Sequence record: NC_041974.1
DNA: 64,000 nucleotides
Strand: one strand, 5' to 3'
Shown piece by piece: positions 7,443-52,349 of the stretch. Under the pieces are notes generated by a model. The model saw only the letters and a program-made list of their open reading frames with translations, made no database searches and was not told the DNA's origin. A program made the position numbers and the translations under genes. Positions within the stretch are counted from its first letter, which is position 1; each line of letters starts with the position of its first letter.

Positions 7443-7465
7443 CAGAACAGCGGTTGGGTGCCTCT

Positions 7466-7567
7466 ATGAACAATGTTTGGCTTTTAGTAATGGCCCTTAT
7501 TTATACAGCAGGGCTTATTGCCGCATGTGTGGTTGCACGCATGGCAGTCTTTCATCATGTGATCTAA
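7466..7567 (+). CDS. Small membrane peptide, 33 aa (not in ORF track)
   Basis: MNNVWLLVMALIYTAGLIAACVVARMAVFHHVI fills the gap between flanking genes. Confidence 0.5.
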   Translation: MNNVWLLVMALIYTAGLIAACVVARMAVFHHVI

Positions 7568-7576
7568 AGGGCAATT

Positions 7577-7855
7577 ATGAGTAAAGGTACTTTGAAAGGC
7601 CTTGGTGTGGTGTTGGCGTGTCTTGTGATTGGCGTATTGCTGTTTGTTTTTGCAACCGCTGTTCAAGCTGCCGATACACCCGTTAACCCCCACTGTGTTG
7701 CCATTACTAACGACAGTACAATTACCACCCAGTGTGACGACGGTACCGTGGTCATTACCAACACCGCAACCTCGACGGTGATGGTGTGTCATGTAAGTAA
7801 AGAAACAAAAGGTCTTCCGCAATGCGTGAAAGACCGGGTTGTCATTTCTAATTAA
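7577..7855 (+). CDS. Predicted secreted Cys-containing small protein
   Basis: Signal peptide ending AVQA; four Cys in the mature part. Confidence 0.7.
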
Positions 7856-7878
7856 CGTTATTCTTCGGAGCTACACAC

Positions 7879-9012
7879 ATGCAGTACAGTACCTTTAATA
7901 CCACTAAAAACGATCAGATGGCTGAACCGATGTTCCTGGGTCAGTCGGTTAACGTCTCACGTTATGATCAGCAGAAGTACCCCGCGTTCGAAAAGCTGAT
8001 TGAGAAACAACTTTCATTCTTCTGGCGCCCTGAAGAGGTGGATGTTTCGCAAGACCGTATCGACTTCCAGGGGTTACCGGATCATGAGAAACACATCTTC
8101 GTGTCTAACCTGAAATACCAAACCCTGCTGGACTCGATTCAGGGTCGTAGTCCGAACGTGGCCCTGCTGCCGATCTGTTCTATCCCGGAACTCGAAACCT
8201 GGATTGAAACCTGGGCGTTCTCTGAAACGATCCACTCGCGCTCATACACCCACATCATCCGTAATATCTTTACTGACCCCTCCATCGTGTTTGATGACAT
8301 CGTGACCAACGAACACATCAAAGCGCGTGCTGAGTCCGTCACGGAGTATTACGACCAGCTGATCGAAATGACCATGTACCTCAACTTACTGGGTGAGGGT
8401 AGCCATGTAATCAATGGTAAGAAAGTCGTGGTGTCGATGCGCGCTATCAAACGTCTGGTCTACCTGTGCATCGTGTCGGTCAACGTGCTGGAAGCCATCC
8501 GCTTCTATGTCTCGTTTGCCTGCTCGTTTGCCTTTGCTGAACGCGAGCTGATGGAAGGTAATGCCAAGATCATTAAACTGATCGCCCGTGATGAAGCCCT
8601 GCATCTGACCGGCACCCAGCACATGATCATGTTGATGAAGTCCGGTGCTGACGATGCTGAGATGGCGGAAATCGTTAAAGAGTGTGAAGCAGAAACATAC
8701 GCACTCTTTAAGGACGCTGCAGAGCAGGAGAAAGACTGGGCGAACTATCTATTCCAGGATGGGTCGATGATCGGTCTGAACAAAGAGATCGTGTGTCAGT
8801 ACATCGAATACATCACCAACATCCGTATTCGCGCCATCGGTTACGATGACATCTACGCCGGTGTCAAAGCTAACCCAATCCCATGGATCAACTCCTGGTT
8901 GGTTTCTGACAACGTGCAAGTCGCTCCACAGGAGTCAGAAATTACCTCCTATTTAGTAGGTCAGATCGATTCAACTGTCGATGCAGATGCGTTTGATAAC
9001 TTCGAACTTTAA
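7879..9012 (+). CDS. nrdB: Ribonucleotide reductase class Ia beta subunit
   Basis: [26 protein letters not shown] (radical Tyr), [16 protein letters not shown] and VQVAPQE; E. coli-like. Confidence 0.98.
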
Positions 9013-9069
9013 TACGTGATCAGCTTCACTCACGTAGAGGGCTGATCGCTAGCCCTTTATGGAGAGTGT

Positions 9070-9903
9070 ATGTCTGTGATAAAAGATAACCCGGATAACT
9101 GGAAAGTGATTCCGGGTTACTCACGTTATGAAATCAATGAAGTCGGCGTTGTAAGAAAGATACATAACAAGAAGGTGATGAAACAATGGCTGCGTGGTAA
9201 TTATACCGCCACTGCTATCACTTCTGATAATAAGTCAACTAGTAGAATAGAATCTATTCATATTTTACTGTGCCTTACATTTATTGGTCCAAAGCCCTTA
9301 CCTGAACCTGGGCACAAACTTGTTACCGCTAACCACAAGGACGGTAACAAACTTAACAATGTGAGGTCTAATGTAGAATGGTTATCCAATTCTGGTAATA
9401 TTCTGCATGCTTACAAGAACCGGCTAAATAAATCATCACAGCACCTGCGTCTAACCAATGTGGTCTCTGGTGAAGTTGTCGACCTACATTCTTACCGCGA
9501 ATTATCCAAATGGATGGGTAATCCTAATCTGCGCGGACGAATGGAGTATCTGAAGTATCGTAACAAGCTTTATCAAGGCCAGTGGCGAATAGAACTTCTT
9601 GGCGAATCAGAGAAGTCTTCAGGGTCTCGTACCAGTAAACAAGTATGCGTAATGGATGTGGCTAAACGACTTGGATTGAGGGAGGGTGAGTTTGATACTT
9701 TCATCTTTAATTCCATGCATGACGCCGCAGCGGCATTAGGCGTAAGTCGCAAAGGTATTGGTCGATCGATCAGTACCAAAGGACGCCATGTTGTAAATGG
9801 GTACGCTATATCGCTATCATTTGACGATATGGCTAATATCACTTATGACAAAGCGTATGTGGAGATTAGTCTTAAATGGGCGAAACTCAGGGGTCAGAAG
9901 TAA
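9070..9903 (+). mobile_element. Free-standing HNH homing endonuclease gene (NUMOD4-HNH-NUMOD1-like)
   Basis: WKVIPGYSRYEINEVG; HILLCLTF..NHKDGNKLNN..NVEW; FNSMHDAAAALGVS; AT-richer than neighbours. Confidence 0.88.
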
Positions 9904-9971
9904 GTTCTTATCTGGTCGGTCAGATCGACTCGAAAGTGGACGCCAACGATTTCGACGATTTCCAACTGTAA
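9888..9971 (+). pseudogene. Displaced second copy of the nrdB 3' end (27 codons)
   Basis: Reads [27 protein letters not shown]-stop versus [27 protein letters not shown]-stop at 8929..9012; both 84 nt. Confidence 0.9.
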
Positions 9972-9978
9972 CTGCCAG

Positions 9979-10002
9979 GCACCCATGCTTCGGTGTGGGT
10001 GC
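9979..10002 (+). terminator. Hairpin behind the displaced nrdB end
   Basis: GCACCCATGC-TTCG-GTGTGGGTGC. Confidence 0.6.
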
Positions 10003-10019
10003 TGTATAAAGGAGGATGT

Positions 10020-10616
10020 ATGGATGTAGGGCAACGCAATGTCCAGATCTCAGATCAGTATGAGATTATCGGCATGGCGGGTGTAAACTACCTGCCTTTA
10101 AAGAAGTCTTCCTCCGATACATACCGCGTGGTGTTGTGTCGGTTGGATGGGTTAGGGCGTGACAACACTAACTTGCATTATGACATCGATGATGCTTTTA
10201 CTGACCACTACCGCTTTATCACCCAGCAACTCCCCTTTGCCGAATTTGATGGTAGGGATCGTGTCACCACACTCATGCAGAACTGGCAAGGCAAAGCAAC
10301 CACCGAGATCATTGACAACATCTTTAGTTCAATTGATCCCGACGCAGGTGCCTTTACGCTAGAAAGCATCAGTGTGGAAAACGGTTACCTTTATGGCGAG
10401 GTCAGATTAGCCAATAGCATTGTGGGAACGAATCTCTCCATGATGCTGAACCATCCACGTCCCGATCAGGCGGCCATGATCTTTGGTGTTCGCTATCTGT
10501 CCGTCAATACCAGGCTTGACGGCCTGCAGTATGCTGACGTCAAGAAGATCTGTGCGTATGACGTGAATATCGTCAGCGAAACCGAATTAACCCAACGTCG
10601 TAACGGCGTGAAATAA
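10020..10616 (+). CDS. Hypothetical protein, weak resemblance to prohead protease fold
   Basis: AGGAGG RBS before ATG 10020; LYGEVRL..FGVRY..KKICAYDV. Confidence 0.7.
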   Translation: MDVGQRNVQISDQYEIIGMAGVNYLPLKKSSSDTYRVVLCRLDGLGRDNTNLHYDIDDAFTDHYRFITQQLPFAEFDGRDRVTTLMQNWQGKATTEIIDNIFSSIDPDAGAFTLESISVENGYLYGEVRLANSIVGTNLSMMLNHPRPDQAAMIFGVRYLSVNTRLDGLQYADVKKICAYDVNIVSETELTQRRNGVK

Positions 10617-10650
10617 TGAACCGTTTAAAAGGTGCTGTGAGAGCCTATAA

Positions 10651-11268
10651 ATGAAAAGAACAAAAAATATAAAGCTTGATCGTTTTCGTAAGGCATGGAA
10701 ATTTAAGAAGGTTACGCTGGCATTGATGGTGGTAACCGGATCGTTTTACCTGGTGGCGTGCGATGAGCCGCGGGACCAGCAAGTGCAGATGTATCAGAAT
10801 GCGGATGATTGTGGTCGTGCGCGCCCGCAAGACAAGCAGCACTGTTCTGATGCGTACAATAACGCCCTGCGTGAATCTGAGCGTACTGCCCCGCGTTACG
10901 GATCGAAAGGAGATTGTGATGCCGAGTTTGGCTCTGACAACTGCTACCAATCCACGGCCCATAGCCCGACCTGGATGCCTTACATGGGCGGGTACATGTA
11001 CGGACGCAACGGGAGTTACGCACAACCGTTGTATTCCTCACGGGTAACGTCAAGTCCTGCCTATCACCGCTACGTTGATGCTGGCGGGCATAACTACGGT
11101 AGCGCTATCTCTGGACGCTCGATTAATACCACACGCAGCGCGTTAGCGCCCAAGCCTGCAGTCACTTCAACCATTACCCGTGGCGGATTCGGTGCAACTG
11201 TGGCACACATGAGTAGTTCCCATTCTTCGTCCAGTCACAGCAGTGGCGGACATTCATCTGGCGGTTAA
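10651..11268 (+). CDS. ygiB: DUF1190/UPF0441 lipoprotein, YgiB-like
   Basis: MKRTK..FRK.W N-terminus; lipobox LVAC; YQNADDC, AYNNAL.E.ERTAP.Y, DC.AEFG; TITRGGFG and Ser/Gly tail. Confidence 0.9.
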   Translation: MKRTKNIKLDRFRKAWKFKKVTLALMVVTGSFYLVACDEPRDQQVQMYQNADDCGRARPQDKQHCSDAYNNALRESERTAPRYGSKGDCDAEFGSDNCYQSTAHSPTWMPYMGGYMYGRNGSYAQPLYSSRVTSSPAYHRYVDAGGHNYGSAISGRSINTTRSALAPKPAVTSTITRGGFGATVAHMSSSHSSSSHSSGGHSSGG

Positions 11269-51467: not shown

Positions 51468-52349
51468 ATGTCTGATAACGCACGCGTTTTACCCGATCCA
51501 CGCGAAGATGGCAAGACGCACATCAACGTCTATAGCCGTGGCGCTTCCTGGCTAGGACAGCAACTTTCTAATATGTCCTACTACGACTTCGCACATCCAC
51601 GCTACGGCGTGTTCGCCTCGTTGGAGGGCTTCTGGTATTGGTTGTCTACGGGCAAGCAACACGAGGAGTTACGGAAGCTTGCCGGGGTCAAAGCGAAAAT
51701 GACCGGCCGGGAGTTCGAGACGATCCCAAATGAAAACTTTGAAGAAGAGTTCAAAGAAGCCATGCGTCTGCGTCTGGAGCAACACCCGATCATCGCCAAT
51801 GCCCTGGCTGAATCGTTACTGCCGTTAAAGCACTACTATTGTTACGGCGGGAAAGTGATCGACTTGTATGACCGCCACAAATGGCAAATGGACTTCTACG
51901 AGGAGTGGCGTAAAGCCAATGCCCCCGAAGACACCACCTTGGTATTGTTGATCTCTGGCTCACGTAAAGAGAAAGACTACGACGCCTTTAAGCACATCGT
52001 GATGACCTACCTGCAACCGTATATCGACAAGATAAAGGACACGTACAAAATCACCCTGCTTTCGGGGCTCGCCTGGGAAGGTCCCGATGACATGGCAATT
52101 CGTCTGTGTCGGGAAGAAGGCTTCATGTTGATTGGTCTGCCGGCGAAGTGGAAAGAGCAAGGCAAAGCCGCGGGCATGATCCGCAATGGTGCCATGGGGC
52201 GGTTGTGTAACAAGGCTTTGGTGTTCTGGGATGGTGAGTCACCGGGGACAAAAGGGATGATTGATTACCTGAAGAAAAATACTATAGACCATCTTGTGTA
52301 TTTACACGGTAAACATGAACCTGACTGGAAAGCCCCGGAGACATCATGA
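51468..52349 (+). CDS. NADAR (T4 gp30.3-like) domain fused to a SLOG/YspA domain
   Basis: N-half LSNM..F..G.FASLEGF, G..AK..GR, QH..ANAL..LKH; C-half LISGSRK, LSGLAWEGPD, PAKW..GKAAGMIRNG and FWDGESPGTKGMI. Confidence 0.78.
   Translation: MSDNARVLPDPREDGKTHINVYSRGASWLGQQLSNMSYYDFAHPRYGVFASLEGFWYWLSTGKQHEELRKLAGVKAKMTGREFETIPNENFEEEFKEAMRLRLEQHPIIANALAESLLPLKHYYCYGGKVIDLYDRHKWQMDFYEEWRKANAPEDTTLVLLISGSRKEKDYDAFKHIVMTYLQPYIDKIKDTYKITLLSGLAWEGPDDMAIRLCREEGFMLIGLPAKWKEQGKAAGMIRNGAMGRLCNKALVFWDGESPGTKGMIDYLKKNTIDHLVYLHGKHEPDWKAPETS

Follow-up and report, generated by a model that had tools for sequence, protein, structure and literature searches.

In fungal mitochondria, several genes are hybrids associated with an endonuclease ORF. 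Such mORF gene hybrids have been described for atp6 of Allomyces macrogynus, for atp6, atp9, cox2 and nad3 of Glomus sp., for atp9 of Rhizopus and for cox2 of Mortierella (PMC3630166). In these hybrids, the core of the gene is followed by a foreign, in-phase C-terminal piece, then by the endonuclease ORF and finally by the native piece. The native piece matches element-free relatives, while the inserted piece is divergent (64–81% there, about 67% at the locus described below). In phages, the seg and mob genes of T4, including MobE between nrdA and nrdB, are free-standing genes located between other genes, and they spread by intronless homing (PMC2790892, PMC2988022). In the Aeromonas phage Aeh1, the insertion of mobE is reported to have divided nrdA in two (PMC3045599; Friedrich et al. 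2007).

The order of parts known from the fungal hybrids is also found at the nrdB gene of Erwinia phage vB_EamM_Simmy50 (NC_041974.1), a 271-kb jumbo phage of the genus Agricanvirus, whose record annotation includes a nuclear shell protein and a PhuZ tubulin. The window analysed here is a stretch of 64,000 nucleotides of this record, and a window coordinate equals the record coordinate minus 62000. It is likely, in our judgement, that the 3′ end of nrdB is occupied by a free-standing I-HmuI-like HNH gene, carried in a 959-nt cassette at about codon 352/353. The features of the locus are as follows:

7879–9012, plus strand: nrdB, encoding the class Ia ribonucleotide reductase beta subunit (377 aa), a hybrid of a native body and a foreign tail
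8934–9893, plus strand: inserted cassette of about 959 nt, comprising the foreign tail, a spacer and the endonuclease gene, delimited by comparison with the Ea35-70 locus
8929–9012, plus strand: in-use nrdB tail, codons 351–377 and stop, of foreign origin as judged from identity to other tails and from GC3
9013–9069, plus strand: cassette spacer of 57 nt, with a predicted fold, near-identical in contigs L013 and L015
9070–9903, plus strand: I-HmuI-like HNH homing endonuclease gene (277 aa), assigned from the PDB match to 1u3e
9888–9971, plus strand: orphaned native nrdB tail, overlapping the endonuclease stop codon, 99% identical to the Ea35-70 tail
9978–10003, plus strand: native post-nrdB hairpin with an 11-bp stem and a UUCG loop, a predicted fold that is also present in phages without the endonuclease gene
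10020–10616, plus strand: gp93, annotated as a hypothetical protein, the downstream neighbour and right-hand homology region

The record itself annotates nrdB (7879–9012), a "putative homing endonuclease" (9070–9903) and a hypothetical gene (10020–10616), and the second nrdB end (9888–9971) bears no annotation.

Two nrdB tails and the empty allele

The Simmy50 NrdB matches the Pfam family Ribonuc_red_sm (E=1e-52), and E. coli NrdB structures align with it over its full length in a PDB search (E=1e-201). An earlier note on this DNA had reported that the end of nrdB is present twice, and this observation is borne out. The two copies (8929–9012 and 9888–9971) are each 84 nt long, in frame and 959 nt apart. 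They agree at 58 of 84 nucleotides and, besides the stop, at 19 of 27 residues; of the codon differences, 11 are synonymous and 8 non-synonymous. The binomial probability of this match is about 1e-15, the next-best ungapped 84-mer match in the window, on either strand, reaches 40/84, and the motif SYLVGQID occurs in the six frames of the window only in the two tail copies. The exact start of the duplication had been placed about 6 nt too early, because the first 6 nt of the downstream copy are the endonuclease's own 3′ end, as in contig L015, which lacks the orphan. The HNH ORF ends at 9903, 16 nt into the downstream copy.

The check set beforehand was a comparison with an endonuclease-free relative. 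Ea35-70 lacks the endonuclease gene, and its nrdB follows that of Simmy50 up to window position 8933. Beyond the equivalent of this position, it continues with the sequence of the downstream copy, then with the same hairpin and downstream gene, and its locus is 959 nt shorter than that of Simmy50, which is the spacing of the two tail copies. This identifies the downstream copy as the native tail, and the foreign tail, the 57-nt spacer and the HNH gene as the inserted block. The nrdB end of Ea35-70 thus corresponds to the copy at 9888–9971 and runs into the hairpin, as anticipated, and both the empty allele and the 959-nt difference agree with the proposal that the endonuclease inserted inside nrdB and brought a replacement tail. 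The identity between the two phages is 98–100% on both sides and drops only over the in-use tail: there are 20 differences in the 1050-nt nrdB body (98% identical) and 30 in the final 84 nt. Starting at the orphan tail and including gp93, Simmy50 is 97–100% identical to both Ea35-70 and Deimos-Minion. The donor-type sequence of the Simmy50 cassette starts with base 8934, and the match to the empty allele returns within 9894–9900.

By its sequence, the in-use tail is foreign and resembles those of other Agricanvirus-like phages. In the last 69 nt, its identity is 65–67% to the native tail, 78% to the native tail of AH06, a phage without the endonuclease, and 86–87% to the tails of the cassette-bearing contigs L013 and L015; over the same length, the orphan tail is 99% identical to that of Ea35-70. 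The A/T-ending codons of the upstream copy had been likened to those of the HNH gene, and the GC3 values agree: the in-use tail (0.36–0.37) and the HNH gene (0.40) are both lower than the nrdB body (0.65) and the downstream copy (0.57). The downstream copy is also closer to the E. coli NrdB tail, as taken from the PDB alignment, in line with what had been noted. The description of the inserted tail as synonymous, however, does not hold, since 8 of its 27 residues differ from the native ones, and it resembles the natural tails of AH06 and contig L015. It keeps the tyrosine and the SYLVGQIDS block, and its changes fall at codons 353, 355 and 356 as well as within the twelve C-terminal residues. 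Codon 355 is mostly I or Q in endonuclease-linked tails, and V in endonuclease-free and orphan tails.

The copies are direct repeats in the same orientation, which could also be the product of a local tandem duplication of the nrdB end that diverged in place, with the endonuclease gene inserted independently between the copies. We consider such a history very improbable. The flanks are 98–100% identical to Ea35-70, and yet the in-use tail differs at 30/84 nt, with its synonymous sites saturated. Moreover, the in-use tail and the spacer co-occur with 82–87% identical endonucleases in other contigs, and the composition of the tail matches that of the endonuclease gene.

In the nrdB translation, the native body leads into the cassette tail and the cassette stop, so that the gene is complete and splicing is not needed; the hybrid nrdB is predicted to use the inserted tail, and the phage's original tail, a short way downstream, would go untranslated. 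The claim that neither an intron nor an intein is required was upheld, because there is no intron signal (no Rfam match for a group I intron at E≤1 in window positions 7500–10700) and nrdB ends at its own stop. An intein is not indicated by the layout either, in which the nrdB stop at 9010–9012 is followed by the 57-nt non-coding spacer and then by a separate endonuclease ORF. The loci of N1M2, L015, L016 and L017 likewise gave no Rfam match to an intron RNA at the gathering score. One could still suppose that an intron, an intein or a translational bypass is involved and that mature NrdB uses the downstream tail: phage nrdB genes are known to host group I introns with HNH genes, the nrdB of the related phage Sureiya is interrupted and has weak intron-like signals, and the downstream copy in Simmy50 is intact and near the native sequence. 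This supposition is hardly credible in the light of the Rfam result, of the conserved, complete tail and stop codon that nrdB already possesses, of the separate endonuclease ORF with its own ribosome-binding site after the 57-nt spacer, and of the downstream copy in phage RAY, which contains one stop in the nrdB frame.

Related loci, and the probable spread and origin of the cassette

Within one ICTV species, both states of the locus exist, with the cassette in Special G and without it in MadMel. The right junction is identical in Simmy50, Special G, RAY, Mortimer, Bosolaphorus and the metagenomic contig L013. On the left, at least three different crossover points are found among these five isolates and the one contig: the donor-type tract starts at 8934 in Simmy50, at 8925 in Special G, and at 8920 or further left in RAY, Mortimer and Bosolaphorus, and contig L013 is a mosaic at its left side. 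A single right junction combined with varied left tract starts is the pattern expected of co-conversion. As with homing genes, presence or absence at one site is polymorphic among close relatives, and the flanks are co-converted. The architecture, the empty allele, the foreign in-use tail, the common right junction, the variable left junctions and the recurrence of the arrangement are all directly supported by the loci compared.

The homologues recovered, which are metagenome proteins of 87, 82, 46 and 43% identity and a 46%-identical protein of Klebsiella phage N1M2, all adjoin nrdB directly downstream. In N1M2, which belongs to another genus, the in-use tail is followed by a strong hairpin, the HNH gene and then an orphan tail, and the endonuclease ORF reads in frame into the orphan. 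Compared with the endonuclease-free Serratia phage Yubaba, the orphan tail of N1M2 is 74% identical and its in-use tail 59%, and the DNA 3′ of the orphan matches the post-nrdB DNA of Yubaba. An IMG/VR single-protein search and exact tail–spacer junction scans of metagenome and viral contigs returned phage RAY only, and an HNH-alignment scan of bacterial-genome contigs yielded no close relatives, all matches reaching at most about 40% over the N-terminal domain.

We also examined 123 loci harbouring more distant I-HmuI-like genes, asking whether the end of the upstream gene was duplicated. One clear further case was found, in an Acetatifactor phage contig (L128), where an HNH gene, preceded by a spacer, lies downstream of the large terminase gene. 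The last 22 or so residues of this HNH protein are an in-frame copy of the terminase tail (z=19, 56/84 nt), and the GC3 is 0.42 in the terminase body, 0.26 in the in-use tail, 0.22 in the HNH gene and 0.44 in the orphan. A search for an endonuclease-free relative of this terminase gave nothing closer than 62%. Two short duplicated-end candidates (L068, which equals L121, and L091) are only suggestive. The terminase case emerged from the HNH-alignment scan of genome contigs.

Deimos-Minion, MadMel, Rebecca and Desertfox carry a 43%-identical HNH gene upstream of nrdB. The flanks in this group are 97–100% identical to Simmy50, and the nrdB body is nearly all foreign (52–95% identity in 60-nt windows), becoming native again at codons 357–359. 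The published description of these phages refers to a "reversed order" of the HNH and reductase genes (PMC6690015). By sequence comparison, these are two paralogous endonuclease genes at opposite nrdB ends, not an order reversal, and the published account is corrected in this respect. The Deimos-Minion NrdB has been detected by mass spectrometry, from an allele without the Simmy50-type cassette (PMC6690015).

The positions of the boundaries bear on the target site. The first codon of the orphan is 353 in Simmy50 and 355 in N1M2; with the foreign-to-native boundary of the Deimos-Minion group, this gives three independent boundaries that cluster in about 24 nt of the 1134-nt nrdB. The left crossovers of the occupied alleles lie 0–35 nt upstream of this stretch of codons 353–359. 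We infer, with moderate confidence, that the HNH enzyme cuts or nicks the endonuclease-free nrdB near codons 352–359, since recombination between the two tail copies could also make some of the boundaries. Repair would then copy the cassette from an occupied genome, with the nrdB body serving as the left arm and the orphan tail, the hairpin and gp93 as the right arm. The orphan fragment thus acts as a marker of the insertion point and, with the two other boundaries, narrows the likely target to about 24 nt. The earlier suggestion that recoding destroys the cut site has to be modified, as recoding alone is insufficient for immunity. The native sequence from codon 353 survives in the orphan, and a target confined to the tail would therefore still be cuttable in occupied genomes. 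More likely, the target spans the junction, and the insertion itself would split it.

The duplication is not obligatory, given that contigs L015, L016 and L017 have the endonuclease after nrdB and lack the orphan tail. In L015, the endonuclease 3′ end resembles nrdB codons 350–356 at 13/19 positions, and the Simmy50 junction lies inside that stretch. From these sequences, a single origin of the duplication, at the entry of the cassette into the Ea35-70-like lineage, appears most likely. The cassette would have entered this lineage once, from a relative with a non-homologous downstream flank, and the duplication would have arisen at that time. In this founding event, the left end of a break in nrdB would have copied the tail, the spacer and the endonuclease from the relative, and the right end, having no downstream homology, would have been joined through microhomology of the endonuclease 3′ end with nrdB codons 351–353. 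The later spread among 98%-identical phages would have had homology on both sides. L015 was considered as the direct donor and ruled out, because the dS between the Simmy50 and L015 HNH gene plus tail (about 1.2–1.3) is equal to that of the nrdB bodies, and the synonymous divergence of this contig is therefore that of the genome backbone.

Another possibility would be that the element is an old, intron-like insertion at a fixed position in nrdB, that the orphan is its integral downstream homology arm, and that L015, L016 and L017 lost the orphan by deletion. The orphan start positions lie within two codons of each other in two genera, and the L015 endonuclease stop abuts the ribosome-binding site of the next gene, which is compatible with a deletion between short repeats. 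The in-use tails of L015, L016 and L017 also have a low, HNH-like GC3 (0.37, 0.41 and 0.30, against 0.61, 0.57 and 0.49 in the bodies), suggesting that the tail travels with the endonuclease. However, endonuclease-free tails are likewise below their bodies in GC3, and 27 codons provide a noisy estimate. Furthermore, the endonuclease-side junction is not alike in Simmy50 and N1M2, and no intermediate with a decaying orphan was found among the loci recovered. We therefore regard the old insertion as possible but doubtful, and continue to favour a single entry accompanied by the duplication.

The endonuclease, its expression and the NrdA interface

The best PDB sequence match of the HNH protein is I-HmuI (1u3e, E=4e-5, residues 10–121), and the alignment reveals both the HNH catalytic motif and an N-terminal NUMOD4-type region. 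The motif HKDGNK..N..N..W is conserved in the Simmy50 protein, and its columns are invariant in nine homologues. The Pfam matches to NUMOD4 and HNH_3 are below the curated cut-offs in Simmy50 (18.7 against 23.4, and 17.4 against 24.8, respectively), and the HNH_3 cut-off is passed by the Deimos-Minion and N1M2 homologues. The AlphaFold model is of low confidence (mean pLDDT 62, core below 50), and its top Foldseek match is again 1u3e, although not at a significant level (E=0.15). The endonuclease gene is full length in all five cassette-bearing isolates, and its dN/dS of 0.07–0.21 against homologues indicates that it is under purifying selection.

We infer that the Simmy50 HNH protein is capable of cleavage and homing. 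Its mobility is putative, however, with the Pfam matches under their cut-offs, and HNH genes have other roles in phages. The protein might accordingly be a domesticated or decaying nuclease that is not currently mobile, the allele pattern being the outcome of ordinary recombination among co-circulating phages. We find this improbable, in view of the conserved catalytic motif, the low dN/dS, the strict association with the nrdB 3′ end over 43–98% sequence identity, and the sharp fall in identity, which coincides exactly with the cassette.

The spacer may have a role in controlling the expression of the endonuclease. The spacer and its flanks (9008–9083) have a predicted MFE of −29.2 kcal/mol (z=−4.6, with 0/200 shuffles as stable), and the predicted structure pairs the ribosome-binding site and the start codon of the endonuclease gene. 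A different, equally strong hairpin is predicted at the corresponding place in N1M2. By analogy with other phage endonuclease genes, this structure may limit the translation of the endonuclease from the nrdB transcript. Since the cassette brings its structured spacer after the in-use tail, the native post-nrdB hairpin is replaced as well. This native hairpin, which had been described as a TTCG hairpin after the downstream copy, was recovered at 9978–10003 with its 11-bp stem and UUCG loop, and is located directly 3′ of nrdB in Ea35-70, Deimos-Minion and AH06, where no endonuclease gene follows. The terminator scan misses it because it lacks a T-run, and a consensus scan for promoters and terminators gave matches no more numerous than in shuffled sequence.

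The C-terminal peptide of NrdB is the part that docks on NrdA. A gene for the large reductase subunit (nrdA) is neither annotated in the Simmy50 record nor present among the long ORFs scanned against Pfam, and the docking partner is therefore presumably the host NrdA. The earlier claim that homing alters the subunit interface is thus retained as a change at the sequence level, amounting to 8 substitutions, while the partner affected would presumably be the host protein rather than an annotated phage NrdA. Homing would thereby swap the NrdA-docking peptide in a phage that apparently depends on host NrdA.

In N1M2 and in the Acetatifactor terminase locus, the displaced tail forms the predicted C-terminus of the endonuclease. 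In Simmy50, a 31-codon ORF (9876–9971) spans the orphan tail behind a possible ribosome-binding site; its candidacy as a conserved gene is weakened by the one stop in the RAY copy. As the NrdB tail docks on NrdA, an endonuclease or a small peptide carrying this tail could bind NrdA. The displaced tail might then not be inert, and could disturb the reductase of the host or of competitors that lack the endonuclease. We offer this as a speculation with little chance of being correct. If true, tail-replacement cassettes would join introns and inteins as a third means by which homing endonucleases reside inside phage coding sequences.

Comparison with known systems

I-HmuI of the Bacillus phage SPO1 (PDB 1u3e) is the closest solved relative of the endonuclease by sequence, and its N-terminal and HNH motifs are kept in the Simmy50 protein, which is about 100 residues longer. 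I-HmuI is a nicking enzyme inside a group I intron, whereas the Simmy50 locus has no detectable intron, and nicking by the Simmy50 enzyme is putative.

The Simmy50 gene shares several features with the seg and mob genes of T4, such as MobE. In both cases, a free-standing gene is found beside an essential gene of nucleotide metabolism, flanking markers are co-converted, and presence or absence is polymorphic among close relatives. The T4 genes, however, sit between genes without a duplicated gene end, while the Simmy50 insertion lies within a coding sequence, the missing end of which is provided by the cassette. The likeness to mobE of Aeh1 is of another kind. There, an HNH gene is likewise reported to lie inside a ribonucleotide reductase gene, the function of which is kept without splicing and with the help of element-borne sequence. 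In Aeh1, two polypeptides reassemble, whereas in Simmy50 one complete NrdB is predicted and the displaced piece is unused.

Phage homing endonucleases would thus need neither an intron nor an intein to enter the coding sequence of an essential gene, since they bring along the piece of the gene that they displace. This may also explain the short gene-end fragments and the odd C-terminal extensions on HNH genes that occur in phage annotations. A description of a tail-replacement cassette in a phage was not found in the searchable literature, the coverage of which is partial, so that this absence is weak evidence. The earlier documentation of the tail-carrying solution comes from fungal mitochondria.

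The resemblance to the fungal mORF hybrids extends from the order of the parts to the distribution of divergence: relative to Ea35-70, the Simmy50 orphan is 99% and the in-use tail 65% identical, and the corresponding values for N1M2 relative to Yubaba are 74% and 59%. Unlike the fungal elements, those described here are found in dsDNA phages, encode an I-HmuI-like HNH enzyme and target nrdB and a terminase gene, and their endonuclease ORF either terminates within the orphan or continues into it in frame. Judged from the arrangement and identities of its parts, the Simmy50 locus is the known architecture of fungal mitochondria, here in a new type of host and with a different endonuclease family.

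Tail copies in N1M2, a terminase locus and two short candidates

A nrdB tail-replacement locus is also found in a genus other than that of Simmy50, in a Klebsiella phage. The corresponding loci, together with two possible short orphan tails, are as follows.

L010:1822-3804, Klebsiella phage N1M2, nrdB tail-replacement locus
L128:1024-3070, Acetatifactor sp. MAG contig JBGVKL010000171.1, large terminase gene, then a spacer, then an I-HmuI-like HNH gene
L068:2025-3092 (= L121, Chryseobacterium daeguense), possible short orphan tail, 13 residues to a stop
L091:1837-3010, possible short orphan tail, 10 residues to a stop

In N1M2, the endonuclease ORF takes in the orphan native tail in the same frame, and the protein thus terminates in an NrdB C-terminal peptide. 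At the terminase locus, the HNH protein closes with ~22 residues that duplicate the terminase tail in frame, and the GC3 signature is that of Simmy50. A search for an endonuclease-free relative of this terminase returned none closer than 62%. In both L068 and L091, the candidate tail from the upstream gene is located at or past the 3' end of an HNH gene, with z ~4-5, and both are only suggestive as orphan-tail cases.

Cassette region and presumed reductase partner of Simmy50

Two further features were located in the cassette region of the window.

9876-9971, 31-codon ORF consisting of Met, five residues and the orphan tail
9008-9083, RNA segment predicted to fold stably (-29.2 kcal/mol, z=-4.6)

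The 31-codon ORF is preceded by a GGAG ~11 nt upstream and is called as a gene in the metagenomic contigs L013 and L014, while the copy in phage RAY has one stop in frame. The predicted RNA structure pairs the ribosome-binding site and the start codon of the endonuclease gene, and the cassette spacer is conserved in L013 and in a further metagenomic contig, L015.

The whole Simmy50 record has no annotation for a ribonucleotide reductase large subunit, and none was found among its long ORFs; the phage seems to carry nrdB without a large-subunit gene. Given that Simmy50 NrdB is highly similar to E. coli NrdB over its full length (E=1e-201), this solitary occurrence implies a pairing with the host NrdA.

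Elsewhere in these genomes, ~0.6 kb of extra annotated ORFs lies between the gp89 and gp90 homologues of Ea35-70 (L001:458-1091) and Mortimer (L007:458-1091), and is missing from Simmy50 (window ~7443-7576), RAY, Special G and Bosolaphorus. The adjacent stretch, window 7540-7700, is only 87-93% identical. A second annotated HNH endonuclease gene of Simmy50, gp63, lies outside the window (record 51576-52166; L106:1576-2166).

Other HNH genes in and beside nrdB

L021:2501-4595, Serratia phage Sureiya, nrdB with a single ~0.9 kb insertion
L002:442-2428, Deimos-Minion, HNH gene upstream of nrdB, a 43%-identical paralogue of the Simmy50 HNH

The ORF within the Sureiya insertion combines HNH_3 and HTH, has the annotation DNA-binding protein, and lies between sub-threshold group I intron matches (19 bits, E ~0.02-0.03). 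The nrdB of its sister phage, Yubaba, is uninterrupted.

In Deimos-Minion, almost all of the nrdB body is foreign (52-95% identity), with flanks that are 97-100% identical, and the return to native sequence occurs at codons 357-359. MadMel (L009) has the same layout, with the paralogous HNH upstream of nrdB. The Deimos-Minion-type HNH/nrdB arrangement has been published as a reversed gene order (PMC6690015).
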